From positions 48,980,001 through 49,044,000 of the forward strand of contig CM060733.1 of assembly GCA_030704615.1 (NCBI GenBank): a DNA stretch of 64,000 nt. The letters are read 5' to 3'. Every line of letters begins with the position of its first letter. Within the stretch, counting starts at the first letter, position 1. The notes beneath the pieces were generated by a model. That model saw only the letters and a list, made by a program, of their open reading frames with translations, did not search any database and was not told where the DNA came from. Shown piece after piece: positions 34,411 through 60,811 of the stretch. The position numbers and the translations under genes were made by a program. The DNA comes from Takakia lepidozioides. Taxonomy: Eukaryota > Plantae > Bryophyta.

Positions 34411-34804
34411 TGTGCTACCGATCGTTCGCGATGTTATGCCTCATGGCCCTCGGTACTGGTTATTGTTTCTACGACACCTTTTTTTAAATATGAATTACAC
34501 CCCCTCTTCTCCCCTTAATGTTTTTTAAGAAAAAAGAGAATAAGGTGTCCACCTACCAATGGAAGGGAAGATAATAGGAATAATGTAAGAACTTAATGCA
34601 AGCGCGTCAGGATGGTCCAGCCCTGACACCCGTACCGCCGGTTCTTCGCCTCCGGCAGACATCGAAAGGCAGCCGGCTGGGCTCGGTCAATCCCTCCCCA
34701 CCCCCGCCCTCATCCCATCGGCGTCGTCGTCCCAGGCGCGTCGTCGCCCCCTGCGTCGTCGTTTTGCGACACCAGTCCGCCGCTTCCAGCAGTCCGCCAG
34801 TTCC

Positions 34805-36180
34805 CTGTAACCCCCGCCCCGGGTTCAACCATCACCCCCATGTAACCCTCTGTAACTCCGCCGAGTGTAACCCACACCACCATGTAACCCTTTGTAACCC
34901 ATATAACCCCATGATCCTCTGTAACCCTCACCACCATGTAACCCTATGTAACCCATGTAACCCTCTATAACACCGCAGAGTGTCACCCCCACCCCTATGT
35001 AACCCTCACTACATGTAATCCTCTATAACACTTTGCAACCCATGTAACCCTATGTAACCCTCTGTAACCCATGTAACCCTCTGTAACACCGCAGAGTGTA
35101 ACCCTCACTCCATGTAACCCTCTGTAACCCTTTGTAACCCATGTAATCCTCTGTGACCCTCTATAACCCATGTAACCCTCTGTCACCCTTTGTAACCCTC
35201 ACCACCATGTAACCCTCTGTAACACCGCAGAGTGTCACCCTCACCACCATGTAACCCTCTGTAACCCATGTAACCCTCTGTGACCCTCTATATCCCTCAC
35301 CAGGTGTAACCCTTACCACCATGTAACCCTCTGTAACACCGCAGAGTGTCACCCTCGCCACCATGTAACCCTCCGTAACCCTCACAAACCCTCTGTGACA
35401 CCGCAGAGTGTCACCCTCATCCCCATGTAACCCTCTATGGCTCTTTAACCCATGTAACCCTCTGTAACACCGCAAAGTGTCACCCTCACCCCTTATGTAA
35501 CCCTCACTCCATGTAACCCTATGTAACCCATGTAACCCTCTGTGACCCTTTGTAACCCTCACCACCATGTAACCCTCTGTAACACCGCAGAGTGTCACCC
35601 TCACCCCTATGTAACCCTCATTCCATGTAACCCTTTCTGACCCTCTGTAACCCTCACCACCATGTAATCCTCTGTAACCCATGTAACCCTCTGTGACCCT
35701 CTATATCCCTCACCAGGTGTAACCCTTACCACCATGTAACCCTCTGTAACACCACAGAGTGTCACCCTCGCCACCATGTAATCCTCACTCCATGTAACCC
35801 TCACAAACCCTCTGTGGCTCTGTAACCCATGTAACCCTCTGTAACACCGCAGAGTGTCGCCCTCACCCCTTATGTAACCCTCACTCCATGTAACCATATG
35901 TAACCCATGTAACCCTCTGTCACCCTTTGTAACCCTCACCACGATGTAACCCTCTGTAACACCGCAGAGTGTCACCCTCACCCCTATGTAACCCTCATTC
36001 CATGTAACCCTCTCTGACCCTCTGTAACCCTCACCACCATGTAACCCATGTAACCTTCTGTGACCCTCTATATCCCTCACCAGGTGTAACCCTTACCACC
36101 ATGTAACCCTCTGTAACACCGCAGAGTGTCACCCTCGCCACCATGTAACCCTCACTCCATATAACCCTCACAAACCCTCT
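34805..36180 (+). repeat. Subterminal TGTAACCC/TGTCACCC motif array A
   Basis: Dense CATGTAACCC(TC) units with the recurrent block TAACACCGCAGAGTGTCACCC. Higher-order marker TATATCCCTCACCAGG at 35289, 35702, 36069. Confidence 0.95.
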
Positions 36181-36301
36181 GGTTACACTCCGCTATTCCG
36201 GGTGACACCGGGATTGCAACTCATACACGTGTGAGTCAGTGCGGATATAATTGATTGCAAGCCGCCAGATTTTAATGAACCCCCGTCTTTCACTTAACCG
36301 A

Positions 36302-36745
36302 CACTACAAGAGATGAGTGTTTTAGGACTACGGATTTGGCGGAGTCATAAAAACGGCACTAGGTATACGACTACAGAGCGCTGAAATGCGTTGCAGTCAT
36401 AGTTTTATCACTTTATAGTAATGGATATCACTACATGACTCCGGAAAATTAAGGAGCATTGGTCAAACATTGTTGACCATGATGACAAGGATGGTTTTAT
36501 GACTAGTGTGATATGTTTGACTAGACGTGGACGACGTTTCATGGAATCTTGTGACTCCATGACTGAAGATGGTTTTACAGCTCTATTTATACGACTACAT
36601 CCCTACACGTGTCATTTTGAAAGCACATACATGAATGTATTCATCCATTGGATGAGTTTATCCATCGATGACATGGCATGTAAACTTATGAGTCCCTTAC
36701 TGCAAATTGTTTCATAACTCTATATATATGACTACATCACTACAC
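36302..36745 (+). mobile_element. CACTA-like terminal fragment
   Basis: Begins CACTACAAGAGATGAG, followed by many ATGACTA/TAGTCAT-type subterminal repeats. Similar to 59645. Confidence 0.55.
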
Positions 36746-37064
36746 ATGTCATTTAAAAGGCATATACATTAATGAATTCATTCAATGGATGGGTTCATCC
36801 ATCCGCCTATACGGTGTGTCGATTTGATATATGTTCAATAAATTGGACCTGGATGGACGTGGCTTAACAAGGATCGCAAGATATATGAGATTAAAATACG
36901 TTGTTGTACAAGGTTAGATCATGTGATGGAAATTATTTTGAATCATTAGATTTTACAGGATCTAACGGTCTAGATTGTTTAAGATCTAACGGTTTAAGAT
37001 TACACCGCCGAACTTTACACCGGGCTGGGACTTAGGCTCTTTTGTCTCCTGCGTTTCACCATCT

Positions 37065-38035
37065 ATTTGATGTTGTGTCATGGAACGCGATGATCGCAAG
37101 ATATGCAGGGGCGTGGGATGGAGGCTTTGCAGACCTTCCTACTCTTGAGCAAATGATGCAGGAAGGAGAAAAGGAGGAGGAGAGGAGACGAGGAGAAGAT
37201 CCCAACATTCTTGTGAGCTCGTCGTTTTTGGGAGAGAGACGAGACGAGGAGACGCTCGTCGTTCTTGGGAGAGTCAGCTTGGTCTTAGTAGGCCGTGTTT
37301 CAATCTCTGCCTGCTCAGCTGCACCGTGGTGGTTCGATCTCACATACCAATCCAACATTACCTGACTACAGATACAAACAGCACACACAAGGGGTCCTTT
37401 TGGGCTGATGGTCAGTCAAATCCTCTATGGGTCATGATACAAGGTAAAGGACAATGTGGTGAGGATACCTTCTTCTTTGACCTATTTCAGCCTATTTTGC
37501 TCTGTTTGGCAGCATGAAAGTATCCAAAAACAGGTAATAGAGATGAGGAGAAGCTTTGGAATGAACACTTTTCCGACCCCAGTCAATGGCGAGACAATGG
37601 AGACAAAAAGGTGAATGCATGTTGGACTACACTAGAGAGAAGTAGATGCAATTTAGAATTAGAACTACTGTAATAATTAGGGTTGGGGTTTGCTGGAAGA
37701 ACTTCACGCCGTCAGTGTCAGCTGCTAGCAGCAAGTATTCATGATTTGAGGGATGGAGGCTTTGGAGACCTATGAGCAAATTATGAGGGAAGGGATACTG
37801 AAGCCCGACCACATAACGTGTGTATGTGTTTGCAATGCGTGTGCAAGCCTGGCAGCCCTGGAAAAGGGCAGAAGGTCTATGGTTGCATCATCAAAGCTGC
37901 AAATGTACCAGATGTCATTTTGAACACTCCCCTGGTGGACAATATGTATGCCAAATGTAGGTGTAGCAAGGATGCAAAGGGAGTGTTCAACAACATGGCT
38001 GAACAAGATGTGGTGTCTTGGAGTACCATGATGAC
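37065..38035 (+). pseudogene. Captured PPR fragments and host-derived patchwork inside the MULE
   Basis: DVVSWNAMIARYA; ILNTPLVDNMYAKCRCSKDAKGVFNNMAEQDVVSWSTM. 37273-37490 matches 23555-23768. Confidence 0.8.
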
Positions 38036-39661
38036 CACCTTCCCCGGTGACTCTCTCTCTCTCTCCCTCTCTCTCCCTCTCTCCAACTACTTGTTTGGGA
38101 TTATCAATTTTTTTCCATAATACTTATTTTGGAAATACTATATATTTTTAATCCCAATTTTTAAGGTTTCATCCATACTGAATGAAATTTCTGTTATAAC
38201 CATAACTGGATGATTTATAGGCAGATATGCATTTCAATGCATTTTAGGTTTATGCTCCTTTGATTTAAACCTATTGAATGCCCATTTTTCATCCTAGTCT
38301 GATACCATCCATACCGGATGGTGGATGAAATCGCGGGTGGTTTTCCTTTAAGTGTCTCTCTGCCCTAGACACAGCACGATGTCGTGCGTGTTTTTTTTCT
38401 CTGGAAGAATGCAATGGCGGACGAATGCTCGATGGCGGCTGAATGCCCGAGCAGCAAGATCCGAACGGGTGTGTTCTTGTTTTTTGAACGCGCGATGATG
38501 GCAGACACTTTCATCTCCCGGATGGCAAATGACATACTGGTATGTTTGCCTACGTTTTTTCCTCATTGATGAAGCAACGGCGGTTATGGAGGTGGGGAAG
38601 CGGCCTGTATTACAAGATACAACCTGTCCTCAACTCTCCTCCCGTTGCATTCTGTTGTGCTCGTTCAAATTCAGATGATGAACACTGCAGCGTCCTACTC
38701 CACAAAAGATTGAGGTTCTTTGTGGTGTCACATCTATGCTTTCTTCTGCTGGTTCTGTGATCTTTGCATGCTTTATGGCTCATACCTGACATGGATAGCA
38801 ACTGTGAAATCCTATAATTCACCTTGCGCATCCTCACTAACGCACAAAACATTTTTTGTGTTTGTTTTTGGGACGGGCGCAGGTGAGGGATTTCACTTGG
38901 CATGAACTCTTTGGCTTGCAGATGATCTGGTTACTGTAGGAGGGATAAGATATGCTGCAAGCTGCCGTTGTTGCAATTTTCTGCTTCAAAGCTGCTTCAA
39001 GGGGGATATGCCTTAAACCTACTTTGATTTCTGGTTCTTGGTAACCAAATCTGTTAAGTCAGGGAAGTAAATGGGCTGGGCCTCCTAGAAATCAGACCTT
39101 ATTGTGAAGGTTCGGGCTGGTTGTGATGACAAGGGTTTGGTGATGCAAGTGTGACATTGGATGCATTTTTCCAAACCTGTTTTCTGGCCTTTTGGAGAGT
39201 CAGACAGTGCTGTTTATGCCTCACCAATTTAGAATGTATTAAGTAAGGCATTGGGTAAGCCTTTTTAAGAACACATACATTCTTTCAGGCTCCCCCATGG
39301 AGATTATAACCTGATTACAAACTGGTATTTTTGAGGATCTCTCTAAAACTTGGCAGAGTGACTGGATAAGGCCCTGGGATACATACCATAGCCCTGCATC
39401 TACTTATGGAAGTACAATCAGTTCAGCTTGTGCTTTTAGGAACATACAAGTCCTTTAAAGCTGTAATAGGGAATTGTTTTCATCAAAGCTCTCACTCTTA
39501 GGCCTGCTGGAATGGTTTTCTCAAAGACCTGTTGAGCTTACAACATACTTGTTTAAGCTATTTGAACCCAAGAATTACCAAGCCAGTATTTTTAAAGGGT
39601 TTTTTTTATTACGAACTGTATTCTTAAGCTCCCCCCAGAGATTGGGAATGTGACATGGTAA

Positions 39662-39664
<3 letters not shown>

Positions 39665-39706
<42 letters not shown>
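39665..39706. repeat. (CT)n microsatellite
   Basis: Perfect CT run. Confidence 0.9.
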
Positions 39707-39709
<3 letters not shown>

Positions 39710-40147
39710 TCCTCTGATACATGATACATATATACATGATTTGTGCAGAGACATGGATAGCTGAAGGAGCAGGGATAGAGTGCCTGGGTCCAGATTCATC
39801 CAAGAGGGCCGGATTTCAATCTCCAGATTACATATGATTCCCTGTGGAAGGATAGCTACAAGAAACCTGCATGGATAGATGATCAATTGGTTGGTCTTGA
39901 GCTGAAGAGCACGACCCCTGCAGGGATGTCTCTCCATCTGTAGATCTTTTAGGAAGTGGAAGGCTAGGCCTAGGGCCCAGCTTTCTTATGACATTGTTAG
40001 CTGATTTTCAGTTCTTCTCCTTAGCTCGGTGCCTTTCTGTTTCCAAGTTATGGCAGTAGTTTCTGGCTGTAGTCTCTTTTCCTGCTAGACTCTTTAGCTC
40101 TATGCAGACCCCCTTCTTTGCTTGCCTTCCTTCTTATGTCTGTGTCT

Positions 40148-42860
40148 TCACTACATGTAACCCTTTATAACACCGCAGAGTGTCACCCCCACCCCTATGT
40201 AACCCTCTGTAACACTTTGCAACCCATGTAACCCTATGTAACCCTCTGTAACCCATGTAACCCTCTGTAACACCGCAGAGTGTAACCCTCACTCCATGTA
40301 ACCCTCTGTAACCCTTTGTAACCCATGTAATCCTTTGTGACCCTCTGTAACCCATGTAACCCTCTGTGACCCTTTGTAACCCTCACCACCATGTAACCCT
40401 CTGTAACACCGCAGAGTGTCACCCTCACCCGTATGTAACCCTCACTCCATGTAACCCTCTCTGACCCTCTATATCCCTCACCAGGTGTAACCCTTTCCAC
40501 CATGTAACCCTCTGTAACACCGCAGAGTGTCACCCTCGCCACCATATAACCCTCTGCAACCCTCACAAACCCTCTGTGACACCGCAGAGTGTCACCCTCA
40601 TCCCCATGTAACCCTCACTCCATGTAACCCTCACAAACCCTCTGTGGCTCTGTAACCCATGTAACCCTCTGTAACACCACAGAGTGTCGCCCTCACCCCT
40701 TATGTAACCCTCATTCCATGTAACCCTCTGTAACACCACAGAGTGTCGCCCTCACCCCTTATGTAACCCTCACTCCATGTAACCCTCTGTAACCCATATA
40801 ACCCTCTGTGACCCTTTGTAACCCTCACCACCATGTAACCCTCTGTAACACCGCAGAGTGTCACCCTCACCCCTATGTAACCCTCATTCCATGTAACCCT
40901 CTCTGACCCTCTGTAACCCTCACCGCCATGTAACCCTCTGTAACCCATGTAACCCTCTGTGACCCTCTATATCCCTCACCAGGTGTAACCCTTACCACCA
41001 TGTAACCCTCTGTAACACCGCAGAGTGTCACCCTCGCCACCATGTAACCCTCCGTAACCCTCACAAACCCTCTGTGACACCGTAGAGTGTCACCTCACTC
41101 CATGTAACCCTCACAAACCCTCTGTGGCTCTGTAACCCATGTAACCCTCTGTAACACTGCAGAGTGTCGCCCTCACCCCTTATGTAACCCTCACTCCATG
41201 TAACCCTCTGTAACCCATGTAACCCTTTGTGACCCTTTGTAACCCTCACCACCATGTAACCCTCTGTAACACCGCAGAGTGTAACCCTCACTCCATGTAA
41301 CCCTCTGTAACCCTTTGTAACCCATGTAATCCTCTGTGACCCTCTGTAACCCATGTAACCCTCTGTGACCCTTTGTAACCCTCACCACCATGTAACCCTC
41401 TGTAACACCGCAGAGTGTCACCCTCACCCGTATGTAACCCTCACTCCATGTAACCCTCTCTGACCCTCTATATCCCTCACCAGGTGTAACCCTTTCCACC
41501 ATGTAACCCTCTGTAATACCGCAGAGTGTCACCCTCGCCACCATATAACCCTCTGTAACCCTCACAAACCCTCTGTGGCTCTGTAACCCATGTAACCCTC
41601 TGTAACACCACAGAGTGTCGCCCTCACCCCTTATGTAACCCTCATTCCATGTAACCCTCTGTAACACCACAGAGTGTCGCCCTCACCCCTTATGTAACCC
41701 TCACTCCATGTAACCCTCTGTAACCCATGTAACCCTCTGTGACCCTTTGTAACCCTCACCACCATGTAACCCTCTGTAACACCGCAGAGTGTCACCCTCA
41801 CCCCTATGTAACCCTCATTCCATGTAACCCCTCTCTGACCCTCTGTAACCCTCACCGCCATGTAACCCTCTGCAACCCATGTAACCCTCTGTGACCCTCT
41901 ATATCCCTCACCAGGTGTAACCCTTACCACCATGTAACCCTTTGTAACACCGCAGAGTGTCACCCTCGCCACCATGTAACCCTCTCTGACCCTCTGTAAC
42001 CCTCTGTGACCCTCTATATCCTTCACTAGGTGTAACCCTTACCACCATGTAATCCTTTGTAACACCGCAGAGTGTCACCCCCATCCCTATGTATCCCTCA
42101 CTCCTTGTAACCCATGTAATCCTTGGTGACCCTATGTAACCCGTGTAACCCTCTGTGACCCTGTGTAACCTATGTAACCCCATGTAACCCTCTCTGACCC
42201 TCTGTAACCCATGTAACCCTCTGTGACCCTCTATAACCCTCACCAGGTGTAACCTTCACCACCATGTAACCCTTAGTAACCCTCTGTAATACTGTAGAGT
42301 GTCACCCTCACCCCTGTGTAACCTCACTCCATGTAACCCTCTGTGACCCTCTGTGACCCTCTGTAACCCTCATCAGGTATAACCCTCACCACCATGTAAC
42401 CCTCCATAACCCGTTTATCCCTCTGTAACACCGCTGAGTGTCACCCTCACTCCATGTAACCCTCCCATGTAACCCTATGTCACCCTCTGTAACCCATGTA
42501 ACCCCATGACCCTCTGTAACCCTTTGTAACCCATGTAACCCTCTGTTACTCCGCGGGGTGTAACCCTCACTCCATGTTATCCTGCATCGTGTAACCCCAA
42601 TGTAAGCTTGTATCATGTTATCCCATATACCCCTCTCCGTGTAACTCCAGTTCCTCGTAACCCCATCATCCCTGTAACCCTCTGCACGTCAGCCCTTTAG
42701 CTCCGCCTCGTGTAACCCTCATTGTGCAACTCTCACATTGTAACCCCACCATGTAACCCCGATACTGTATCAATCCCCTCCGTGTAACCCCCGATTGTGT
42801 CACTCATAGCTCGTGTCACCCCGGATCATTTATCCCCAACGCATGTCACCCCTGTTCGTG
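40148..42860 (+). repeat. TGTAACCC/TGTCACCC motif array B
   Basis: Same units as array A, with marker at 40470, 40968, 41469, 41900. Degenerates toward 42860. Confidence 0.95.
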
Positions 42861-43084
42861 TAGCCCCTTGGTGCCCGGCAAAAATTGGCGGGCTCCAAGA
42901 GGTGTCAGATATTTTGAATTCAAACCTGGGTTACACGATTCGGTGACATCAAAACCCACGTGTAACTCCATCATCGCTCGTCATTTTCACCAGGTGCGTA
43001 GACGACGTGCAGTCCCGAGGGCTCCGCTGCGTTGCCCGCGTGTGTTATGCGATTTGTACTGTACTGGTGGTACTGTTGCTGCTA

Positions 43085-46000
43085 ATGGCATGTGTTGCCG
43101 CGAAGGTGCTAGACGAGGAACGCAAAGCAGCATTGGAATCAAATGGTTTGAAAGATGAGGCGGGAGAACTCTGTCATTTGCAGCATTTGGTATCTCATTT
43201 GAAATGCATCCTACAGCTGCCCATAGACGGGCTTTTCAATCACACAAACCTCCGTTGGATACGCCAGGTTTCCCAGGGAAAAGGGAAACGGATATCCATC
43301 GAAATAGCTGTCGTTCCATGGTCTCGCATTCCTGATTTTCTGGAGGGAGAAAGGAGTAGAGTGGATGGGAAGACCCAATTTTATGTTCAAGATTGAAGGT
43401 ACCGTGAGTTGCCAGATTTGACAACACCGCGTGCAAACAGTTATCGTCAGTGGCATAAGTAAGTCATTTATGAGGGTTGTATAACATTCCCAGCCCCACT
43501 TCTTTCTGCTGGCCTAGCAAAGTCGTATATGGCGATAACCCTCCTCGCTTTATATGCTTTTTTTGCAGGTACCACTGCTGCTACGGCCCAATAGATAGGC
43601 GCACAGACCCGCCGATTGTGAAGAAGAAAGAAAAACCGATAGCAGCCTCCGATAATCAAAAACCAGTCAAGCAAATCAGACGTAAGGCAGCGGATTTCGG
43701 AGAGTCATACAAACGTGGGTGTACGTGTAGCTTCAAAGTTGGCCAGTGTTTTCTAGATTCAGAGTTGGCAATCATCACATACTTCCAGAAACAGTATGTG
43801 GATGCAAAAGGAAAGCCATGTCATGGTTCAGCTGACCCCTCTTCCCATTTCTCGCGATTCGTGCATGCCCCTCGTCTCAGCCAAGATATGAAACAGTGGA
43901 TCGTCGATAGTCTTCGCAGTGGCCTATCTCCAGCTATGATTATGACACAACACACTCAATAGCTCCAGGAAGCTTGTGCGTCTGAGCCAGGCATGGAGTG
44001 GAGTCGCGATTGTTTCTTGTTCGAGTACGACGTGAGAAACATTGCCGACAAGCTTGCGATTGAGAGTTACAAAAAACGATGCACAAAGTGTACGTATGTG
44101 GGTCGATAGCAATCCTGAAAGCGTCTTCTTCTACCATGAAGAGATAGCGCCAGTGGCGGGTGATTTGAAGTTTGTAATTGGAATACAAACGGAGTGGCAA
44201 AAACAGAAAATGATCGACCTGGGACACAACCGTGTGGTATCCTGCGATGCAACATTTGGGACCAACGAAAATAAGGTATTCGTGTCACGCTTTACCTTTC
44301 TTTGCATTTTGAAATGTGAGTGCCATGCAACTGTTGCCAATATTATAACACTCACCTTATTCATTTTTGTACCATTGCGACATTGCAGTTCCCAATGTAT
44401 ACCATGATGGTGTTCGACGAATGGCTCAACGGCATACCTGTTGCTTATATTATATCAGCGAGAAACAAAACGACTGACCTGAGCCTCTGGATGAAACGTC
44501 TTCGCGACCGACTTCTTCAGAGCAAACCAGATTGGAGGCCAAATGCTTTTGTTGTCGACGATGCAGACGCAGAAATCAATGCTATCAGGTACACGGCTAG
44601 AAGTTATAATGTTCTGAGTCACACAGTAATTCACACTACAAGTTGCATGCACGAGGGGTTTCATGGATCGGGCTACACTGCTGCTAGTTACACTGAGAAT
44701 CACAATAAGAGTTAAACTGCCAGTTACACGAGGGGGTGCATTGCTGCCTGTAACACTTGGAGTTATATTGTCAGTTGCTTGAGGGGTTACATGGATTGGG
44801 TTGCAGTGCTGTCTGTTACACTGAGGGTTACACTATCAGTTAGACAGATGGTTATACTGCCTTGAGTTGGACGGAGGGTTACATTGCTGTGAGTTAGACC
44901 GAGGGTTACACTGCTGTGAGTTAGACCGAGGGTTTACACTGCTATGAGGTAGACAGAGGGTTACACTGCGAGTTACACTGGGAGTTACACGGCGTGTCAT
45001 CCGCAATCCTGCATGGATTAGGTTGCACTGCTATAGCCTGTGAGTTATACTGGGAGCATCGCAGAGGGTTGTATGGGTTGGGTCGCTCTGAGAGTTACAC
45101 GGTGTAACATGGATTGCGTTACAGCGCTGCGAGGGGTTATATGTGTTGGGTTACACTGCTGTGAGTTTCACTGATAGTTACATGACCAGATGCACGAGGG
45201 GTTACATGAGTCACACTACTAAGAGTGACACTTTGAAGAGTTACACTTCTACGAGTTACACTGCGAAGAGTTCCTCTGATAAGAGTTACACTGACAAGAG
45301 TTACACTGATGGATTGGGTGGCATTTGATGTGTGTGCGTGCAGGGAATCGTTTGCAGACGTAGCGATATTTCTATGCCTTTGGCATGTTCGCCGCGCTTG
45401 GCTGAAACATTCGTGGCGTAAGATGCCCGATCCATACACTCGCAATGCTGTTTTAAAACAACTTGGCGACGTAATGTACGGCATTAACGCCTGTGTGGGA
45501 GTCACCCCAGAAGAGTGGGCACTGGAGCGACTGGAAGATTTGAATTATTCCTATCCGCTTGCGCGTGACTTCCTACATTACATCAGAATGGAATGGGTCC
45601 CAAAACTGAGCATGTGGATCACGGGGCTCGTTATATTCCCCACGCAAGTCAGGATACTAATGCCGCATTGAATCTTGGCACGGAAATTTGAAGGCTCGTT
45701 TACGCTCGGGAAAGCAAAGGCTTGATGGCAGGAGAATCGATTGGCTGATCAGCAAACTCGTGGGTCCTGTTCTAACCCACTATTGGTATAGAGATAACTT
45801 GAAATCGAAAGGCTTCAAAAGGAATGTACAACAGGAGGAATTTATCAGTAATGTTGTTTGGACTGCAAGGGAGATCCCTGATGTCAATGTTCATTTGCCC
45901 ACTGTTCCTGGTCATCCGGCGATTGTGGATAGTGTTCAAACGGCCGATCGAAGCTACACAATCTATGCACCTGCAACCACCTGGGCTTGTTGTGATTGTC

Positions 46001-46404
46001 CATGGGCTTTGAAGGGTAACTTGTGCAAACATCAAATCCGCGTTCTTCAATTGATGAAGCCAAATCTGAAGGAAGGGCTTATTGTGAAGCTCTGTGGCAC
46101 AAAGCTCGGGACCATTCATGGAGGTCTTCACATGTTGATGAAATCGGAACTTCCAGATATTGATGCAGAGGAGGAAGTTGTGAATCTAGCAGAGCCTACG
46201 GAGTGCTCAGCGAGTGAAACAATGCGCAAACATCTGCTTGCCGAGCTTCGTTGTGTTCGTGGGAGGCTGTCCACTTTACAAGTTAGAATCAACAAAGGTC
46301 TGTTGCACCCTCTTCAAGCAGTTCCATTCATAAAAAATGATGATGGAAACAACATGTCCCTTGCCAGGAAAGTAGATTTTGTAGACCGGTTCCGTAGTAA
46401 GTGA
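43085..46404 (+). pseudogene. MULE transposase 1 with SWIM zinc finger (4 exons; stops and frameshifts)
   Basis: Exons 43085-43458, 43569-44275, 44389-44588, 45344-46404 (GT-AG). Motifs YHCCYGP, KRGCTCSF, GKPCHG, CDATFGTN (D1), FVVDD (D2), CLWH, DTNA.ESWH (E), SWIM CDCPWALKGNLCKH. Confidence 0.92.
44589..45343. repeat. Transposase intron filled with GG/AGTTACAC motif
   Basis: Dozens of (G/A)GTTACAC copies between the GT donor at 44589 and the AG acceptor at 45343. Confidence 0.85.
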
Positions 46405-47692: not shown

Positions 47693-50600
47693 CTAAGAAG
47701 TTGAACTAGGGTCCTTCTTTAGCATAGCCCTAACCTCTAACTGGCTAAGGGAAGGTTGGTGGATCTCATAAGCCCCGGCGCATCCTATATGCACGTTGTA
47801 CATGAAGTACATGTGCTTACAAGGTAGATATGTTTGTTTTTTCTTCTTGACAGATAGCTCATCAAAGTCGGGACAATCACAAGATGGAAACTGACCAATG
47901 TATACATTGTAAACCAATCCTGCTCTGGTAGATCCCTCTGTTTGTAGCTGGTAAATTCTCCCATAACCTGGCTGAGGCACGTTTCTGAATCCACGAACCT
48001 CAGCAATAAGAGTCTCCGCTGACTCTTGGCGACTCAAGTGTCGAGGAGTCGGATCCCGACGCCGAATGCGCACCCCATAGCGTGTAGTGGGATACTTACC
48101 CACAGGAAGGACAACACCTTGATGCATATGTTGTTCCACTGGAAGTGGTCCCACTGGAAAGTTCGGATCAGGAACGTTGGGAGGATGGACTAGTCAAAAA
48201 CCTGCAAGGGTCAAGTTGTCCACCTCTTCTTGTTTAAGGTTGGTTCCAACCTTCACAGGCCACACGTTAGGTATACCCGGTTTTCCCAAGCAATAGGATG
48301 GCACGGTCCCTCCAACACACGACAAAACATCTGTGGGGCAAAACCAAAAAACTTGCAGTTTTGGTTCTTTCATGTTCGGTGCTAGTAACTTGCCAGTGAA
48401 GCAAGGTGCAGGACTTCCTTTACCTTTCCTGATGAGCGCTTTGCATTTATCTTTAGAAACTCCAACCAAGGCAGAACAACGAACCATGGAAGCAGGACCT
48501 GTCCGCTGAATCCTGAACAATGCATCGGAAAAGTCTTGTGTCTCTCTCACTGGATTTCCCCATTGCATTGGCTGAGGAGGGATAGCAACATGTGGATTTG
48601 TCTCACAGAAAGTCGAAGAACCAGGAATGTCATGACTTGATTTGGAGCTGACGAACCTAGATGGCTGGTGTGGACTGGGCATCCTAGTGGCGCGCACTGG
48701 AACAGTCTTTACATTCATATCACACCTCCAAGATTCGTTTGGCCCACCATGCTCATCGCCTAACTTGCGTTTGACTGGAATAGTGCGATTGTCTCCCTCC
48801 AATTGAACCCCCCTTGTGTGCATGGGTGTTCCAGCTACTATGCCACGTACAACCTTACCCATTTTTGCTGGGCTATTAGATCTAGCTGCTTGACGCAACA
48901 TGAGCTCCTCTTTGTCGGGCCCCGTCCCCCATGTCTTTCCTGTGGTGTGCCTGTAAAATGTTGCCTGCTGCAAAAGAGCTCGTGACATGTCATGCATGGT
49001 GGCCTCATATAGATCCACCTTCATTTTTTTCCCATTGCCTGCTGTCTTCCACCAAGCAGAATGGACTGCCTCAGACAAATTAGTGGTAGGCATATCTGCA
49101 TCTGCCTCCACATCCATGTCCTCTCTCATCCATTGGCCCCACATTCGATATCTGTAGTGCCACCATGCAAGCCATGAATCTAGTTTTGGCAGACTCTTTT
49201 CTGTGCATGCTCCTGAAGAGAGCCACCAAGCCCGAATTGCAATGTATGTGTGGCATCCTCCAAGGTAGCACTATCTTTCCATTCATAACAGAGCTGAGTG
49301 TGCCTTTCACGGAAGTCCTCCAAGATATAGTCGTTGGTGTGTCTTCGGAGGCTTTCAGCCCAATGATATAAACATGTTCTTTCTTTACCTTCCATTGGGA
49401 CATTGGGATCAGATCCATAAACCCTTCGAACAGCAGCCCAATTCGCTCCTGCTGCATCCGCCATGAAGCCAGCAAAATTTGGTTTGTTCAAGCCAGCAAG
49501 TTTTGCTTGTTCATTGATCATCTCCCAGAATAACACCTGAGCATCTGCATCCTCTGTTTTCATATCGCAAATGGCAATGGTCATCATTCGCTTGACATAT
49601 GGTTCATAGACATGACACGCAAGAGTTGTCCAATCCTTGATGCGTTTGACATGGTCAAATACTACCCAACTTGTGCGTAGATCCCCCTCACTCATGCGAC
49701 GCACAAGATCAACACCACTCCCGGGACCAGCAACAGACATCTTGAAAACATGGGGGAGATGAGAAGTATGCTGGCCTGGAAGGAGATTGCTGTGAATGAA
49801 ATGGTATGTACTCAGACGCTTCAACTCCAATATGGACATGATGGAATTGACACGTGCAGATGCGACCTTGTTTTTCACATTGGGGCTACAAACATGGGCA
49901 AACTCTTCAAGAATATCTTCCAAAGCCTCTCCCTCAAGACGTACTGTCTCTGTGCCATCAGCCACAAGAACTCGATCAATCAAGAGCTTTTGGGCCATTG
50001 ACAAGGAAATAGCTCCCGGGGTCGACCATGGCTTCATCTTAACGTGCTCTTGAATCATGCTTGATGCATTTTCCGCAGCCTCTCTATTCTCGCCCTTGGC
50101 ACATGGATGGTTATGAAACCCAACGTGAACTGCAACACGTGTATATGTTGGAAGGGAACTTGTGACATAGTACATTCTTGCCCCACAATGCGCCTCACAG
50201 AAAGGTCTTTCTTTGCAGAAACTACACTTGAACTGGTTGAATGGAACTTGGGCTCCTGCAATGAACACCTTGTCTGCATTGCCTTCCCAATAGCGGTCAT
50301 TCCGTTCTCCTTCTTTCTTGAAGAAGGGGCAAGTGCTGCTTTGACATATGAGCTTTCCAACACAAAGAACCTTACTACATTTCACATGATCTGGAACACC
50401 AGACATATTGTAGGTATTGGTCTTGCACCAAGGATGACCATCAAACTTGCGGTCCATGCCTTGGAGGGACTGTGAACCACGGTCCGTACGTAGTTTGACC
50501 ACGGGGGGGAGTTCGTGGATCACTTTTCCATCAAAAGCTCGAGGAAGACACCGAACACGATGCACTGGAATGTGACTATAGTCCAAGGTAGAAAGCTCTC

Positions 50601-51231
50601 CTTTTGATCCATTCCTCCGAGCAATGGCCAAGATACTCAAAATGGACAACACACCAGAAGGAAATGCAGATGTAGCCTCCCTTGCTAGTCGTGGAGATGA
50701 AGATAAACCCCTCGCAGATTCGCAACAATCAGACGTGGTGTTGTCCAATGGAGTTTTCCGAGGCTTCATGTCGTGAAGCAAGACCGTATGAGCAGATGAG
50801 GAAGGTTGAGATCCACAAAATACACTCTTAGAAACCTCAACACAATCCGAATTATGAGACCCCAAGCTCGCCGAATCTGCAACCTCCTCCTTCAATTTAC
50901 AACTCCCATTTGTCGCAGCTTGATCGTTCTTTCTTGCAATAGAAGTGTGCCTCTCATCATGTGACTGTGTATAGCTCGTACCTGTGACACGGTACTTGGA
51001 GAAAGTGTCTGGAAACAACTCCCATTGCTTTTGGCCGTCATTGAAAACTGGAAGCAACACTGTGGAGGCATCATCATCTCCATCATCCTCCAAAAAAACT
51101 GAACCCGGAACAAGTTTGAATCTATTGCATAACCAAGGTTCTGGGATAATGCACTTGTTTCCATTGCAAGGATAACGAACCACTTTTGCATCAGGTGGAC
51201 ATGAAAGCACTGCATATTTTGGTGTAGACAT
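47693..51231 (-). pseudogene. MULE-like transposase 2 with Cys/His-rich (GCM/WRKY-like) N-terminal domain and SWIM finger
   Basis: ORFs 51231-49180, 49144-48194 and 48154-47693 join via one frameshift and one in-frame TGA. Motifs CVGKLICQSSTC..CSFC..HCGAR..GFHNHP, VFDHVKR (D1), FMADAAGAN (D2), CLYHW, TNLSEAVH (E), SWIM CDCPDF...PCKH. Confidence 0.88.
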
Positions 51232-52454: not shown

Positions 52455-53555
52455 TCCGCCGGCGCAGATGCCTAAGTCACTTCAAGTCTCACAAGTTTGC
52501 GAATCTCCACACATACACACAACCGTCTCCGCCGGCGGAGACAGCTCATTCCCCTTGGTTTTTTCTGATGCTTGGAAGGGCTGGGCTGCCACCTCCGCCG
52601 GCGCATACCGTTGGAGCTGGGATGCTCGCATGTTTCAGGAAGTGCTCCTCTACTCCCATCCCGTTTATTTTTTTGCATGCTCATACGTTGCTGATGCTCC
52701 GAGCGGGTTGGGCTGGCGTATCCGCTGGCGCATACCTGTGCAGCAGGGCTGCTCAAATGTTTCAGGAAGTTCTCCCCTTTTCCATCTTCTTTGTTTTTCC
52801 GCATGCTGATGCTCCGAGTGGGCTGCGCTGGCATATCGCCGGCGCATACCCATTGAGTACATTCTTTTTTGCTCAGATCATAGGTTTCAGGAACCTCCTG
52901 CAAGCGTCTCCACCGGCGGAGACACTTGGAGCTTGGTTTTTTTTTGCATATTCCCTGTGTTACGGAAGCTCCAAAGCGCCAAGGCTGCCACCTCTGTCAA
53001 CACAGACCCGTGCAGCAGGGCTGCTCACATATTTCAGGAAGTTCTCCCCCCCTTCCATCTCTTTTGTTTCTCCGCATTCTCATAAGTTGTTGATGCTTCG
53101 AGCGGGCTGGGCTGCCATATCCGCCGGCGCATACCCATTGAGCACAATCTTTTTTTGCTTAGCTCCTAGGTTTCAGGAACCTCATGCAAGATCTCCGCCG
53201 GCGGAGATGCTTGGAGCTTGGTTTTTGTTGTATATTCCTTGTGTTACGTAAGCTCCAAAGTGTCGAGGCTGCCACCTCCGTCGGCGCAGACGCTTGGGGA
53301 ACCTTCCCTATTTTGGTTGATCACAGTATTCAAGTATCTCAAAGCTTCTACGTTGCCACCTCCACAACTCCACATGCTTCCATAGGCCTAGTTTGATCTT
53401 TCAAGGTGCTCCTGTATGTTTGGCTACAACCTCCCTTCCATGGTATGCGCCGGCGCATATGCTTGGAGCTCCTTGAGCAAAATTTCTTCAAGGGCCTCAA
53501 ATCTTGTCAAATTTTGAGTTGGTTGCACATATGTGTCATATGCGCCGGCGTAGGT
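52455..53555. repeat. Dispersed CGCCGGCG motif array within degenerate repeats
   Basis: About a dozen copies including variants, e.g. 52458, 52530, 52596, 52837, 53123, 53195, 53448, 53543. Confidence 0.8.
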
Positions 53556-53786
53556 GGTCGGAGGTCCTCTGTTGGGATGCTCACGCCTGTATTCTGCTGC
53601 AAGTTGTAAGCTTTGAAAGACAAGGATATTCATGGAATTAGTTGACTATCCAAATTCATTTGTTTTCTTCATGCAACCATGACACTGAACTGCTCTTTTT
53701 ACATATTATACATTCACACATGTGCTCTTCTCATACACTGACATCTTGAACTGTTTTGGTCTATGGAATTAGGAAATTACTACTAC

Positions 53787-54286
53787 NNNNNNNNNNNNNN
53801 NNNNNNNNNNNNNNNNNNNNNNNNNNNNNNNNNNNNNNNNNNNNNNNNNNNNNNNNNNNNNNNNNNNNNNNNNNNNNNNNNNNNNNNNNNNNNNNNNNNN
53901 NNNNNNNNNNNNNNNNNNNNNNNNNNNNNNNNNNNNNNNNNNNNNNNNNNNNNNNNNNNNNNNNNNNNNNNNNNNNNNNNNNNNNNNNNNNNNNNNNNNN
54001 NNNNNNNNNNNNNNNNNNNNNNNNNNNNNNNNNNNNNNNNNNNNNNNNNNNNNNNNNNNNNNNNNNNNNNNNNNNNNNNNNNNNNNNNNNNNNNNNNNNN
54101 NNNNNNNNNNNNNNNNNNNNNNNNNNNNNNNNNNNNNNNNNNNNNNNNNNNNNNNNNNNNNNNNNNNNNNNNNNNNNNNNNNNNNNNNNNNNNNNNNNNN
54201 NNNNNNNNNNNNNNNNNNNNNNNNNNNNNNNNNNNNNNNNNNNNNNNNNNNNNNNNNNNNNNNNNNNNNNNNNNNNNNNNNNNNNN
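53787..54286. other. Assembly gap (N run)
   Basis: 500 N. Confidence 1.
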
Positions 54287-57044
54287 TTATTTTATACATC
54301 GGCTCAAAATCTGTCTCTTCCAAGTAAAACTGTAACGGACTAGAAGCCAGGAAGGCATCGCCATAATAAAACTTCACTTCGAGCGCCCCAGGAGGGTCCG
54401 ACACCATTCTGAACTTTGTCAAGTACCGTTGTTTTAGTCTGCACAACAAACCACACATTACGAACATTACGATGCATCATACAAGAGTTATAATCAATAT
54501 TCAAAATCAGAGAGGATCAAAGTACAATGAGGTACCTCGAACGCTCCCGCAAGTGCTTGGCAAGGACCTCTTGCTGCTGGACAACGTCAACCTCCGAGAC
54601 CCCTGCACTTTTGCCTTTCGGTTTGGTTCGCTGTTTTTTGGGTGCGACAAGAACAGATACTTCTTTGTCAGCGCTAGGGGGTTCAGCCAACCGCTTTCTT
54701 TGAGCAGGCGGCCGTTTTGACCTCCTGGAATTCTCTGCAACCCTGACAATGCCGCCGGTAGGGGGAATTTCTGAGCCAGAGGTGCCTTGTTCTGAGTTTG
54801 CTGCAAGTGCTGAAGACTGCACTCCCTCGTCTGAGACGTGCTGGGGAGGTGATTGACCAAGGGCAGAAGTGTCACAGCTCACCTCCTCGGTGCTACCCCT
54901 ATCAGTGTCACCCTTCTGTTCAAACCCCTTGTCAGAGTCACGCTTCTTAGTGTCACCCTTCTCTTCGGCTACCTCCTCAGTGTCACGATTCTCAGTGTCA
55001 CCCTTCTCTTCGGCTTCCTTCTCAATGTCACCCTTCTCTTCGGCTACCTCCTCAGAGTAACTGTCGCGCACCTCACTTCGGTAAGCTCCCCTTCAAGTCA
55101 TAGTTACTCGCTTTGATGCGCGCGCCTGACTCCCAACCTGGCCGCCGGGCCAACTTGGAGCTTCGGCTGCTCACCGGGACATAACGGTCCCCCTTCGCTC
55201 TCCCACTAAAACTACTCCCCTTATATATACTTCTGTAGCTGTCCGCGGGGGTTTCATAACCAGCCATGCCATTTTATGGCGAACCACCACGAAAACCCTC
55301 GACTCCCGGTGATGAGTCGCGGTGAGTCTTGGCCCACTCACCACGGCCCCTATGGACCGTGATGAGTCCCAAGACTCCCCACGACTCCCACCACGAGGTC
55401 TCCGCCCCCATGGTGAGTCCTATGCCACCCCCACTAAGTCCCGCTAAGCTACCACCACCCCTTGTGGAGCCACCCCCACCGCAACCCGGTGTGCGGGGCT
55501 CCACCTAGTGAGCGCCTCCGCCTCCTTGAGTGCCTTGGGCACTCAAGGGTGCTTCAGCCCCCCATACCTATCGCTGCCGCTGCCCCCACCACAGGGGCAG
55601 CCCCTCATGTGTCCCGACCCCCTGCCCTCAAGGCAAAGGGCCGCGACAGTCACGCATCTCAGTGTCACCCTTCTCTCCGGCTACCTTCTCAGTGTCACTG
55701 GTCTCATGTCACCCTTCTCTTTGGCCGCATTAATAGTGTCACTCTTCGCAGTGTCACCCTTCTCATCGGGTTCCTTCCCAGTGTCACTCTGCTGAGTAAC
55801 AATCTTATGTGTGTCACCCTTGGCAGTGTCACTCTTCTCAGTGTCTAGATGCTCCGCAACATCCTTCTCTTCGTGACTCTCCACAGTGAAACGCTTCTCA
55901 GTGTGACCCTGCTTTGTGTCACCCTTCCAACTGACAACCTCCTCGGTGACACCCTTCCCCGTGTCACGCATGTCGATGTCACTCTTCTTTGCATCAACCT
56001 CCTCAATGCCATCCTTGATTGTGTCGCCCTTCTCCGCACCCTCCAAGACCATGTTGACTAGCAGAAGACCGTCATCCGTCGCGACTAGTGGCCGTGGCAA
56101 AGGAGTGTCACCTTCCACGACTAGTGGTAGTGGAATGTCATCCATGGCAGTGTTACACTCACTGACATCTGCCATGTGGGTTGGCTGTGGGGTGTCACCC
56201 CTATCAGTGTAACCCATGTCAATGTCACTCTCAACGGAAGTTGCAGTGTTCACGGGCAATGGTGTGTCACCCACGACAATGTCTCTCACGGCATTGTCAG
56301 CCACACCGGTATCCGCAGTGTCACCCTGAGGTGCAGTGTAACCCTCCTTCCCTGTTGCTCCTCTCTGCACAGTGTCACCCTCAGGTGCAGTGTAACCCTC
56401 GGTTTCAGGGCATCCTCCCCTTGCAGTGTCACCCTACGCATCAATGGGACCCACGAAGGCTGGGTCATTCTGAGAGAGGTTGACCACATGATCCTGACAA
56501 ATACTTACATTGCTGCATCGAGGGTTCAACCCAACATCTCCAGATTCAAAGTCATACACAGACTCTGGGTCAAGCAGGTCCCCGATTCTTCGATTAAGAC
56601 CTTCAAAAGAAATGACTGGGGCTGCGGACAAAGAGGTTCGCACTTGGGTGTTCCACCTTGATGTATCATCTTCAGTATTAGTATCAGAATTCATGGGCAA
56701 ATCCCGCGTCAAGTCTGCTAGGTTCACCCCTAAGTGCAGCTGGGTTGAGTACAATTCACCAACCTGCGACAAAGATACAACGGCAGATTGACTTGGAATG
56801 ATGTCCTCGTCATGTACATCGTCGCTCTGCGGGGCGGAAATTGGCCCATCGCTCGTCTGCGCGCCCCCTGCGCCCTCTGTATCGCATTGTGGAGGGGCCC
56901 CATACACAACTTCGTGAAGCTCACGTTGAGCCTCAAAAAGGTTTTTGAACGCATTGGCGACTTGATTGGTCATGAGCTCGGACTCATCTGCATCGGGGAA
57001 AAGACAAAGGTTTTTAGTCGTGGAAAGAGGTTTTTGAAAGTGCA

Positions 57045-57455
57045 AGGGTTACACTATGTAAGGGTTACACTGACTAGGACAAGACAGTGGTTCGGATTAT
57101 ACGATGTGGGTTATACCACCCTGTTTGAGATAGTAGTTTGCAATGGGTTACACTACCATGGGTTACACTACTGAGATTACACAACGAGAGGGTAACAAAT
57201 CTAGGGTAACACAGCGAGGGGTACCATTAGGGGTACACTGATTACAGGGTTACATACTCCGAGGGTTACACTGATTACAGGGTTACACACAGCGAGGGTT
57301 ACACTGAGTACAAGGTTCCACATAGCGAGGGTTACACTGATTACAGGGTTACACACAACGAGGGTTACACTGAGTTACAAGGTTCCACATAGCGAGGGTT
57401 ACAATGATTACAAGATTACACAGAAATGGGTTACACGACGAGAGGGGTGACAGTG
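57045..57455. repeat. Intronic GGGTTACAC array
   Basis: Tandem GAGGGTTACACTGATTACAGGGTTACAC units. Confidence 0.9.
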
Positions 57456-58369
57456 GATGGAGTAACACTTACAGAGATACCAAGGCACTACAGACCCAAG
57501 GTCTCTCATGTACTAGATGCCCAAACGCGCATTGAAGTCCATTTCTGTTGGTGATTCGCTGAAGAGGCCACAACACCAAAGCTGGATAAACGATTCTCTC
57601 TGTTGGATCGCAAAGTGATGGGCGGCGCGACGACGGCTTGCCTTGCAAAACTGTATAGCTCCGTTGATCTTAATTGACCGGTCACCCCACTCTTCTGTAC
57701 TCAAACTCGATCTTAAGTCTTCGAGCTCAGAATCCAAGGTCGCAATTCCGTCACCAGGTTGTGCAAAGTACATCAGACTAAAGCCGTAATACTCATCGAC
57801 CAGGTCCTTCACCTTTGAGGCCGTAAGAGCACTTTCCAGAAGTTCAGTCGTGAACCCCAACCTGGGATGCGTTTGGGAAACTGACCTGCCATGATTTCTT
57901 ACATCGTTGTGGGCCAGAATTCTCAAAAGGAGTGGTGGCGGTCCAATGTGCGGTTTGGTGAGATTCTCCATTTGACTGATCAATCCTTCGGCAAAACCAC
58001 GAGTGAATTCCAACGGATCTGGAACAACCAAACCTTTGATTCCATCTACAGTAATAGTGATGACAAGAGGATTTGAAGTTCTGGCATCGTCAAGGTCGGT
58101 ATTGCCAACAGCTAGTTCGTCCATCGTGTCATCATCATGTGAGGCTTGGCTCTCTCGATGGACTCGTGTAAGTCTCCCACCTTTTTTCTTTTTCTGCTTT
58201 GGCATGTCAGGATGCCCAATGCTCTCTAAATACTCCTTCACCCGATTCAATTCCTCTATCATTAACGGACCATGATCCGGCTGGGCAGTAAACGCCTTGT
58301 GGGCAGCAACAACACTGTCCATATCATCGCTTCTAAGATGATATCGAGCTCCCTGCGCAATACAACGTG

Positions 58370-58570
58370 AAGGGTTACACCAGAGAAAAAGGTTACAACA
58401 CGAGGGGTTACACATGAAAATGGGTTACAAACAAGATGGGCTACACGGGGTTACACAGAGGTAGGTTACACACCATAGGGGTTTTTAAAAGGGGTCCTCT
58501 GTAGGTGGGTTACACTCTGGGTTACACGCCACAGGAGAGACAGGGGGGGTAACACAAGGGGTTACATGGA
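58370..58570. repeat. Intronic GGGTTACAC array
   Basis: About 10 GGGTTACA copies between 58353 and 58620. Confidence 0.85.
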
Positions 58571-59644
58571 TAGACAACAGCCCAAAATTTGAAAAACAGA
58601 GAAATGGCAGGGAATCCAACTTGATTGTCTGTCGATAGAACCCAACTTGATTTTGCAGCTGTCGCATGGACTGTGCCCTCGCCTCGCGCAACAAATTCTT
58701 GGAATGCCGGCCAAAACCCCTTCTCATTGACATTCGGAAATGGGAACTGAGGAATAAGGCCATGCGGTAGCAAGAGGATTGAACTTGGAGTTCGCTTTCG
58801 CAAGATGAACCTTGAGCTCCGGTTTCCCCGGTTTCCAATGTTGATTTTCTTTGCAATAGGGACAGGTAGAGGTGGGCTCAATCGCCGCTTGTCTCTCTCG
58901 TTAGAAACCTGCCGAATAGAAGGACCAGGGACAGAAACAGCAGGAGCACCAGAAGATGGAACCTCTGTAGCAGAAATAGCCGAAGAAGGTACAATAGCAG
59001 GCACTTCAATAGGATCTGCAATCTCACCCAAAGCCACCCTATTTTGCAGAATCCATGCATGATATGCATCAACAGAAGAAGCTGGAACATAATTCATCAC
59101 ATTTTCAATAGCCATGGCATGCTTGAGCTCCTCATCAGGAAACGGTTTTGTTCCTTTCGGTCTGGCCATACATGCGCCTGTTCCTTCGACAATATGCCGA
59201 TTCAATCTGCTCTTATCTACCTTTACTGCCCCACATTAAGGACATTTGAACTTAGGCCGGCCCTTTGATCCCTCCACCTTGGCCTCTCTACACCTGGTGT
59301 GGCAGTACGCGATCATTGTAGCATGCTCATGCTCAGTGTGCCAGAAGCGAACTCGTTCGCCATCCCTTTTCAAGTGATCAAATGGAATAGTAGCCTCTCC
59401 AGGGAACAAATAACAATCAGCCATGACAAAAGAAAAAGCTGACAGAAGAGAAGAGAAGAGCAAGAGCAAGAAAAGACAAGACAAGAAAAGACCAAGACCA
59501 AGAGAATTCCGAAGAACGCACAACAGGGAGCACGCACAGCAAGGAGTGCAGGAAGAATAGGAAAGGCTGCGAGAAGGGGAAAATTGAACAATGATCAAAG
59601 AACGAAGAACGAAGCTAGCTAGATGTCACCCGTAAGGCATGTCG

Positions 59645-60050
59645 CACTACAACAGATGAGCGTTTTTATGACTGCACATATGACTATTTTTTCAGTCCTA
59701 TATGCGTTCATGACTATATCACTTTGTAGTGAAAAACGCCCTGTCATAGCGACTAGTCTTTAGGACTGTGTTTTGCAAGTCATAGCCGTGACTGCGTGCG
59801 TGGCACCTGGAGTCATGCTGTAGAGAGGATGTAGTCACAACTATATGATTTATATATGACTAACTATATGACTACATGTCCACAAAGTATAACTCCATTG
59901 GAGAGGCGTCAGAGAGACATATGTAGCACTCCGGATGTGACACGTGTCCACATGGACAACATATATAACCCACACGTGGGAAAGAAATATCGTATCATAT
60001 AATGCCACGTTGCCATGATGTAGTCATGAGTATATAACTTCATGACTAAA
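59645..60050 (+). mobile_element. CACTA-like terminal fragment
   Basis: CACTACAACAGATGAG followed by dense ATGACTA/TAGTCAT repeats. Confidence 0.55.
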
Positions 60051-60811
60051 GTGGTTTTTTAATAATATTTTAATTTAATACATTAAATCATACAATTATA
60101 ATATTTAGATTATTAATTGATTTAAATTCTCATTAGGTTTCTAGGAAAATAGAATGGAAACCATTGTTGTCTTTTTTTATTATTTTTATTTTTGTTAACA
60201 AAGAGGGACAGTGGGGGACAGTGGCCTCTAGAACTTTATAGGTAATTGACATAAAATGTCCTTGGATACAAAGAGGAAAAATAACCTCTGGATAGAGTGC
60301 CATAGAGGCTGAAAGAGGAGGGTTACATAGGGGTGGGGGTGACACTCTGCGTTGTTATAGAGGGTTACATGGGTTACAGAGGGTTACATGGTGGTGTGGG
60401 TTACACTCGACGGAGTTACAGAGGTTACATGGGGGTGATGGTTGAACCCGGGGCGGGGGTTACAGGGAACTAGCGGACTGCTGGAAGCGGCGGACTAGTG
60501 TCGCAGAACGACGACGACGCCGATGGGATGAGGGCGGGGGTGGGGAGGGATTGACCGAGCCCAGCCGGCTGCCTTTCGGAGGCGAAGAACCGGCGGTACG
60601 GGTGTCAGGGCTGGACCGTCCTGACGCGCTTGCATTAAGTTCTTACATTATTCCTATTATCTTCCCAATGGAAGCCAATAGTGACTCCCTTTGGGATGAA
60701 GATACACCATAATTTACATTCCCTTTTCTTTTTTAAAACATAGACCAATTTGGCTACCATGCACATACATAAATGAAATTGTGATTGTTGGCAATGGGTT
60801 CCGTCTTTATA

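Follow-up and report, generated by a model that had tools for sequence, protein, structure and literature searches.

In the 64-kb window analyzed in this work (i.e., the whole 64,000-nucleotide stretch of contig CM060733.1, positions 48,980,001 to 49,044,000), one short motif, (G)TGT[A/C]AC[C/T]C, is concentrated within a single transposon, a Mutator-like element (MULE) of 26.1 kb, and probably functions in cis, as a site for some protein of the MULE clade to which the element belongs. Among the candidate proteins the transposase is most likely the binder, and we consider the chances somewhat better than even that the motif is a multi-copy site of a DNA-binding protein of the clade, the likeliest one being the N-terminal part of TP1, the first of two transposases encoded within the element. 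In favor of a site acting in cis, the motif is confined to the element as far as the window reaches, is mirrored in both terminal inverted repeats (TIRs), is the only sequence shared by otherwise unrelated clusters, and avoids non-repetitive coding DNA, and a TGTAAC core is enriched in non-coding DNA of four related elements. An earlier note on this DNA had proposed that the motif serves self-recognition or anti-silencing, in the manner of the VANC proteins of Arabidopsis VANDAL elements. The cis half of this proposal stands on the TIRs, the clusters, and the relatives, but the accessory gene, which the note had named as one possible source of the binding protein, shows neither VANC domains nor homologs and is broken in the window.

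The element was recognized as a single MULE insertion at positions 34566-60665. Identical 9-bp target-site duplications (CAATGGAAG), read from the sequence, lie at 34557-34565 and 60666-60674, directly outside a left TIR of 442 bp (34566-35007, + strand), which begins with GGAAGATAATAGG, and a right TIR of 348 bp (60318-60665, - strand), which begins with GGAAGATAATAGG at 60665 in reverse complement. The perfect 9 bp fall within the 9-11-bp target duplications of MULEs and, together with the TIRs, imply that the 26.1 kb moved as one unit; from the same duplication it may be argued that the two sides of an assembly gap (53787-54286) belong together. When three larger indels (of 10, 29, and 55 bp) and a gap of one base are set aside, the TIRs are approximately 97% alike, and the 55-bp indel consists of motif repeats gained or lost. 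The outermost 195-240 bp of each TIR lack the motif (on the left, the first 240 bp, with copies starting at 34806), after which the motif points inward from both ends, the eight copies of the right TIR being in mirrored orientation. Both TIRs are thus composed of a unique terminal part followed by ~10-bp TGTAACCC units, which is a trait of foldback-type elements. Membership in the CACTA (En/Spm) group with its TnpA protein was also considered and ruled out, as the termini read GGAAGATAAT and the target duplication is 9 bp long.

The strict form of the motif, TGT[AC]ACCC or its reverse complement GGGT[GT]ACA, has 258 matches in the window (217 and 41, respectively). All but two of them (256) are located inside the element, with those two outside 34.8-60.5 kb, and 200 shuffles of the element gave 1.5 matches on average and never more than 5. 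The relaxed core TGTMACYC was found 284 times, including four matches outside the element, while GGGTTACA is the most frequent 8-mer within it (210 copies inside vs. one outside). It should be stressed that this privacy is judged against the 38 kb of flanks contained in the window. The relaxed-core matches inside the element group into nine clusters, and 189 of the 258 strict matches (73%) are found in two tandem arrays that belong to a single higher-order repeat family, the remaining copies forming seven smaller clusters. Counted as relaxed-core matches (n) and with orientation given for each cluster, they are distributed as follows: 34806-36207 (n = 70, all but one copy on the + strand), 40156-42968 (n = 125, +), 44784-45305 within a TP1 intron (n = 15, all -), 46517-47074 (n = 15, mostly +), 54.9-56.4 kb (22 + strand matches in a repeat of 15-bp period), 57046-57452 (n = 15, -), 58372-58566 (n = 7, -), and 60320-60464 in the right TIR (n = 8, -). 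Conversely, about 11 kb of the element (the spacer at 36.2-40.1 kb and the block with the second transposase, TP2) are motif-free; the intervals 36.2-40.1, 47.7-51.2, and 51.2-53.8 kb contain 0-1 matches each, and the non-repetitive TP1 exons, TP2, and the 4-kb spacer contain none. Every place at which the earlier note had located the motif was recovered in this census, as was its presence in both orientations (217 vs. 41 strict matches, with clusters that are +, -, or mostly +), but the note had overlooked the 22 + strand matches at 54.9-56.4 kb, and its picture of an element saturated by the motif was overstated, with 73% of the matches in two arrays and some 11 kb free of them.

The clusters have only the core (G)TGTMACYC in common, whereas their flanking sequences, repeat units, and spacers are unrelated. 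The core is embedded in ..TGTAACCCTC.. within the arrays, in aGTGTAACtC within the TP1 intron, and in GTGTAACCC within the accessory clusters; the units measure 10/19, 27, 15, or 33 bp, and two clusters are not tandem at all, their spacers being unique. Array 1 (34806-36207, + strand, 1.4 kb, 70 motif copies) continues the left TIR and was resolved with Tandem Repeats Finder (TRF) into units of 10, 19, 59, 115, and 377 bp. Array 2 (40148-42577, + strand, 2.4 kb) was assigned to the same repeat family by self-BLAST and TRF, with an identity of 75-84%, and merges gradually into the non-tandem cluster at 42578-42968 (+ strand), which lies directly upstream of TP1; there, copies of CGTGTAACCC are spaced irregularly, 15-35 bp apart, by unique sequences, and TRF reported no tandem array. 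In the alignment of array 1 with array 2, conservation reached 0.94-0.96 for the motif core and 0.88-0.96 for recurrent linker words. As to their composition, the arrays have a strong negative GC skew (-0.39 to -0.51) and hold (34692-42541) 20 of the 21 (C3N1-7)x4 tracts of the window, which could form G-quadruplexes on the - strand. TAACCCT, moreover, is common to the 10-bp array unit and telomere repeats of the TTAGGG type.

The same core recurs in related elements identified on metagenome contigs. In four of them (L004, L010, L011, and L014), whose transposases are 35-55% identical to TP1, TGTAAC is present in 22-27 copies vs. 3.7-5.6 expected under uniform base composition, which corresponds to a 4-6-fold enrichment (Poisson p from 1e-7 to 4e-12) and a rank of second to fifth among all 6-mers. 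The bias of these copies toward non-coding DNA is significant in three of the four relatives (p from 6e-6 to 0.02), and they are found, e.g., in a transposase intron of L011 and just 3' of the transposase of L004. In the latter element, YCTGTAACAC occurs seven times in 320 bp, at a position matching the 46517-47081 cluster of the window. The controls, i.e., 6 kb of L010 flank, the unrelated MULE locus L001, and the flanks within the window, contain TGTAAC at the expected level. The extension 3' of TGTAAC varies by element (-ATG, -CTGCA, or -AC, and -CC in the window element), as would be expected if the site and its protein diverge together. None of the four relatives carries large arrays. Three of them (L010, L011, and L014) are complete elements of 9-11 kb with long TIRs, a transposase gene, and a convergent accessory gene approximately 1 kb apart, and without TP2. 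Their accessory product resembles the accessory open reading frame (ORF) of the window only marginally (BLASTP E-value 2e-4, hhalign probability 9.6%). TGTAAC is therefore shared among elements whose transposases align clearly and whose accessory genes align marginally at best, which favors the transposase as the binder. With the transposase in this role, loading of the Muta1 type or self-activation of the AtMu1c type would be more economical than a VANC-like model.

Many weak sites could provide high-avidity, family-specific loading of such a protein. At the ends of the element, loading would promote synapsis and cleavage, as it does with the subterminal repeats of Muta1, and binding at the internal clusters (upstream of TP1, in its intron, in its 3' region, and in non-coding DNA of the accessory region) could keep the genes of the element active, for which the AtMu1c transposase, TnpA, and VANC21 offer precedents. 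Replication slippage and unequal exchange would then expand and turn over the arrays. Several points weigh against such a binding site. The two arrays with 73% of the motif matches could have expanded neutrally, and within them the core is barely better conserved than the linker words. The enrichment in the relatives is modest, with expectations derived from uniform base composition, and the analysis does not show which of the two, transposase or accessory protein, is the binder. Moreover, the only other sequence of the exact family to be retrieved was one 1.6-kb contig, and no RNA run was found for the region.

The candidate binder, TP1 (43477-46404, + strand), is a MULE/SWIM transposase gene with several exons, all homologous pieces of which are open. 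Its SWIM domain lies at the Pfam threshold (E-value 6e-4, 19.7 bits vs. a cut-off of 19.6), and the MULE domain gave a weak match (E-value 0.024) because introns split it. The gene is colinear with, and 35-55% identical to, its homologs in the metagenome contigs L004-L014, the products of which carry faint or weak PF10551 matches. The earlier observation that an intron of the transposase, counted there as the third, is filled with the motif proved correct: the intron (44590-45343, + strand, 754 bp, GT..AG ends) contains 15 reversed copies, in the forms GGGTTACAC and GAGTTACAC and in units of 27, 15, and 30 bp, and its removal keeps the frame by joining AINAIR to ESFADVAIFLCLWH (i.e., the junction AINAIR-ESFADV). 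In the four relatives, there is no intron at this position and the flanking exons are ~15 bp apart or overlap, which indicates that this motif-built intron is specific to the lineage of the window element. It was also found in an independent 1.6-kb Logan contig (L003, 98.5% identical), the only other copy of the exact family retrieved; when metagenome contigs were scanned for exact matches to the TIR end or to the 19-bp array unit, neither gave any. The gene is followed by the cluster at 46517-47081 (+ strand), in which 15 copies of GTGTAAC[C/T]C occur with mixed spacing. In L008, L009, and L004, the transposase is immediately followed by a shared small ORF (MASL.V.R.SAAVW.WF.RCP...).

The accessory region is located on the - strand, between 59424 and 54517. 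Its 5' ORF (58574-59424, with ATG at 59424) encodes a C2HC-type finger, KFKCP-stop-CGAVKVDKSRLNRHIVEGTGAC, which in the window copy is interrupted by TAA at 59236-59238. Contigs of the public runs X1 and X6 have A at 59236, which turns this codon into TAT (Tyr) and indicates that other copies are intact at this site. The ORF is followed by a putative intron (58372-58573, - strand), i.e., a cluster of seven motif copies with unique spacers, and then by a second ORF (57513-58353, - strand), which gives ~280 aa after the acceptor ...gcgcag (with GG following). The next cluster (57046-57459, - strand), whose 15 copies are organized in a 33-bp unit and have the sense orientation of the - strand ORFs, may be an intron or intergenic, since the ORF upstream of it ends in a stop at 57513, and the accessory region may accordingly consist of two genes rather than one spliced gene. 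Motif clusters are thus present at both places for which large accessory introns had been proposed (57046-57452 and 58372-58566), but the reading of the first one as an intron is put in question by this stop. The 3' part (54517-57048, - strand) is one frame with an acidic segment and xKGDT peptide repeats (54902-56435, - strand), which are encoded by AAGGGTGACACT, that is, by the motif itself, in 22 matches. The DNA of these repeats has a period of 15 bp and 0% indels, while most non-coding arrays have 5-23%, which fits coding constraint. The frame is broken by TAG at 56434-56436 and by a very-high-copy repeat of 587 bp inserted at 55062-55648, with loose contig ends at both borders, a contig depth of ~100-1000x that of its neighbors in all four public runs, and no Rfam match. 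The window copy is not fully intact: two stops and the inserted repeat disrupt its accessory gene, and a nested element, the TP2 block, is probably present as well. Among public runs, no RNA run containing the region was found, and the contigs covering 53500-59450 contain no spliced joints.

An exhaustive search among 1.84 billion representative proteins revealed no homolog of the accessory ORF at 57513-58353 (~300 aa), its single match, to an animal coiled-coil/C1q protein, being rejected as spurious, and ESM Atlas gave nothing above 0.81. A single-sequence AlphaFold2 (AF2) model of this ORF was unusable (predicted local distance difference test score, pLDDT, 38). The accessory pieces have no Pfam match (most searched to an E-value of 10, 54517-55071 to 1), hence none to the VANC domains DUF1985 and DUF287, in line with the caution of the earlier note, which had claimed no homology to VANC. 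The convergent gene of the relatives (L004, 5790-6773, - strand, and likewise in L010, L011, and L014) represents a large unannotated family with an invariant WGWHPFY and more than 100 clusters in the ENA, JGI, and Logan assemblies. The alignment of this family (A2) has no Pfam match; its AF2 model is all-alpha (pLDDT 69), and a Foldseek search against PDB found no match with an E-value below 0.5.

Three other explanations of the motif have to be weighed against a site read by the transposase. The motif could be VANC-like in the proper sense, with a zinc-finger/KGDT accessory protein binding the arrays and removing or blocking methylation of its own family, which we regard as rather unlikely. 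The layout does resemble VANDAL21, with a dense short motif in introns and upstream regions and tandem repeats (PMC5735166), and the accessory ORF combines a C2HC finger with tandem peptide repeats, as the variable regions of VANC do, other copies having Tyr in place of the stop within the finger. However, this ORF has no DUF1985, DUF287, or other Pfam match and no homolog, its single-sequence model is of no use, and the window gene contains two stops and the repeat insertion; TGTAAC is common to relatives whose accessory genes have only the marginal likeness given above (2e-4, 9.6%), which fits the conserved transposase better. It is also conceivable that neutral dynamics produced the whole pattern, i.e., that a repeat internal to the TIR was spread by slippage and unequal exchange, with pieces copied or inverted and decaying, and has no function beyond perhaps one in the TIR. 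The higher-order repeats and the 75-84% likeness of the arrays, the 55-bp indel by which the TIRs differ in repeat number, and a core not clearly more conserved than the linker words would all be expected in that case, and the unrelated L001 also has tandem repeats upstream of its transposase. Yet clusters with unrelated units and unique spacers retain one and the same core, four divergent relatives without large arrays show enrichment of the core, and ~11 kb of the element, made up of other non-coding or of foreign DNA, lacks the motif, so that we find a neutral origin unlikely.

A role for the host or for DNA structure appears very unlikely. It would involve telomere-like TAACCCT bound by host Myb-type proteins, G-quadruplexes formed by the G-rich strand, or opposed arrays giving hairpin RNA and small interfering RNAs, with the arrays as targets of silencing. 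This explanation would account for the clustering of 20 of the 21 (C3N1-7)x4 tracts in the arrays and their GC skew (-0.39 to -0.51), for the TAACCCT shared by the array unit and telomere repeats, and for clusters in both orientations; the same regions of VANDALs are described as targets of RNA-directed DNA methylation (PMC10398659). Nevertheless, the intron and 3' clusters use GAGTTACAC and GTGTAACTC, which have no CCC run, and the relatives use TGTAACA. The part common to all of them is consequently TGTAAC, and not a G-tract or telobox.

The second transposase gene, TP2 (47693-51231, - strand, ORFs of 683, 316, and 153 aa, Pfam SWIM), also of the MULE/SWIM type, is unrelated to TP1. It is colinear with L001 and has only two database homologs (38-39% identical). 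The block in which it resides (47.1-53.8 kb) carries no TGTAACCC. Upstream of TP2, at 52457-53550, there are eight copies of the palindrome CGCCGGCG, placed inside repeats of ~280 bp; the remainder of the 64 kb has none, and the palindrome thus resembles a further private motif, that of a different MULE. As the block has its own motif, lacks TGTAACCC, and is missing from the complete relatives L010, L011, and L014, it probably represents a nested MULE that belongs to another, rare family and may have one end in the assembly gap. No TIR or target-site duplication of this putative nested element was found in the readable sequence. None of the public contigs bridges the gap, and one X1 contig enters it for 255 letters. 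No motif cluster or ORF used in this work crosses the gap, and ORFs that were called through its Ns are artefacts.

The spacer that separates the two arrays (36208-40147) is motif-free and contains CT microsatellites and fragments encoding peptides that resembled pentatricopeptide repeat (PPR) proteins by eye. A Pfam search gave no match and did not confirm this PPR identity. A 240-bp stretch of the spacer (37261-37500) is 85% identical to the flank at 23542-23777, and the spacer fragments might be captured host or transposable element (TE) DNA. Rfam detected nothing across 33-62 kb. The flanks themselves contain transposon fragments (15039-15518, 21891-22664, and 31489-33196) of PIF/Harbinger-type DDE_Tnp_4, Ty3-type integrase, gag, and protease, and the control DNA for the motif counts is therefore TE-rich and not genic. 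The earlier statement that the motif is not arrayed in flanking host DNA is consequently borne out by the counts, with two strict matches outside the element, but not in its wording, because these flanks are other transposons rather than host genes.

To our knowledge, sequence-specific anti-silencing by transposons has so far been documented only for Arabidopsis elements (VANDAL/VANC, Spm TnpA, and AtMu1c), and a literature search for VANC-like systems in non-seed plants returned nothing relevant. A VANDAL-like cis signature in a distant MULE clade of an apparently non-seed plant would suggest that the strategy is old or has arisen more than once. A far-reaching version would be that this clade evolved its own self-recognition and anti-silencing independently of Arabidopsis VANC, with TGTAAC-core sites in introns, spacers, and TIRs that are recognized either by the transposase or by a zinc-finger protein restricted to the lineage, xKGDT repeats encoded by the motif DNA, and a private motif for each family; this appears rather unlikely. 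The motif and TP1, or the motif and the zinc-finger protein, nonetheless form a concrete, testable candidate pair. Furthermore, the intron built of motif repeats, present in TP1 and absent from its relatives, may exemplify how the turnover of a transposon's cis elements can drive the gain of an intron. Should the motif be no more than a subterminal repeat that has expanded, the element would be an ordinary foldback-type MULE, though a very large one.

Among the systems to which the window element can be compared, VANDALs are not known to have TIRs. In En/Spm, the TnpA protein has roles in both transposition and anti-silencing, and the motifs are subterminal and 12 bp long. In VANDAL21, VANC21 binds arrays of YAGTATTAY in introns and upstream regions (PMC5735166). 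The window element resembles VANDAL21 and VANDAL6 in being a MULE with a transposase and accessory gene(s) (PMC5735166, PMC10398659), in its family-private motif of 8-9 bp, dense in introns, upstream regions, and intergenic DNA and organized into fast-evolving tandem repeats, and in the tandem peptide repeats of the accessory protein. It differs in that its accessory ORFs have neither DUF1985 nor DUF287 and no detectable homology to VANC, its long TIRs contain the motif, its arrays are far larger (1.4 and 2.8 kb), and its clusters occur in both orientations. The foldback-type MULE Muta1, from Aedes aegypti, carries 12-bp subterminal repeats which raise transposase binding, cleavage, and excision, with binding and excision increasing with repeat number (PMC5499845). 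The likeness includes target-site duplications of 8-9 bp and long TIRs in which short subterminal tandem repeats (12 bp x 9 vs. ~10 bp here) come after a terminal part, but the repeats of Muta1 are confined to its 145-bp TIR, whereas in the window they extend to kilobase-long arrays, introns, and intergenic clusters of a 26-kb body with accessory genes. The AtMu1c transposase, which, with no accessory protein involved, binds motifs in its TIRs and brings about hypomethylation specific to its family (bioRxiv 10.64898/2026.08.24.746577), is a direct precedent for a transposase as the binder of its own motif, although the AtMu1 sites are located at the TIRs only, with no internal arrays and no accessory gene. 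In Galileo, tandem repeats of the TIRs contain the THAP sites (PMC3688188), and there, as with TnpA, many short subterminal sites lend specificity to a short recognition sequence, but these elements belong to other superfamilies (P and CACTA, respectively), with different target duplications and termini. Judged by its sequence features, the window element combines the build of a foldback-type MULE with internal motif clusters of the VANDAL kind, in a plant that is apparently not a seed plant.

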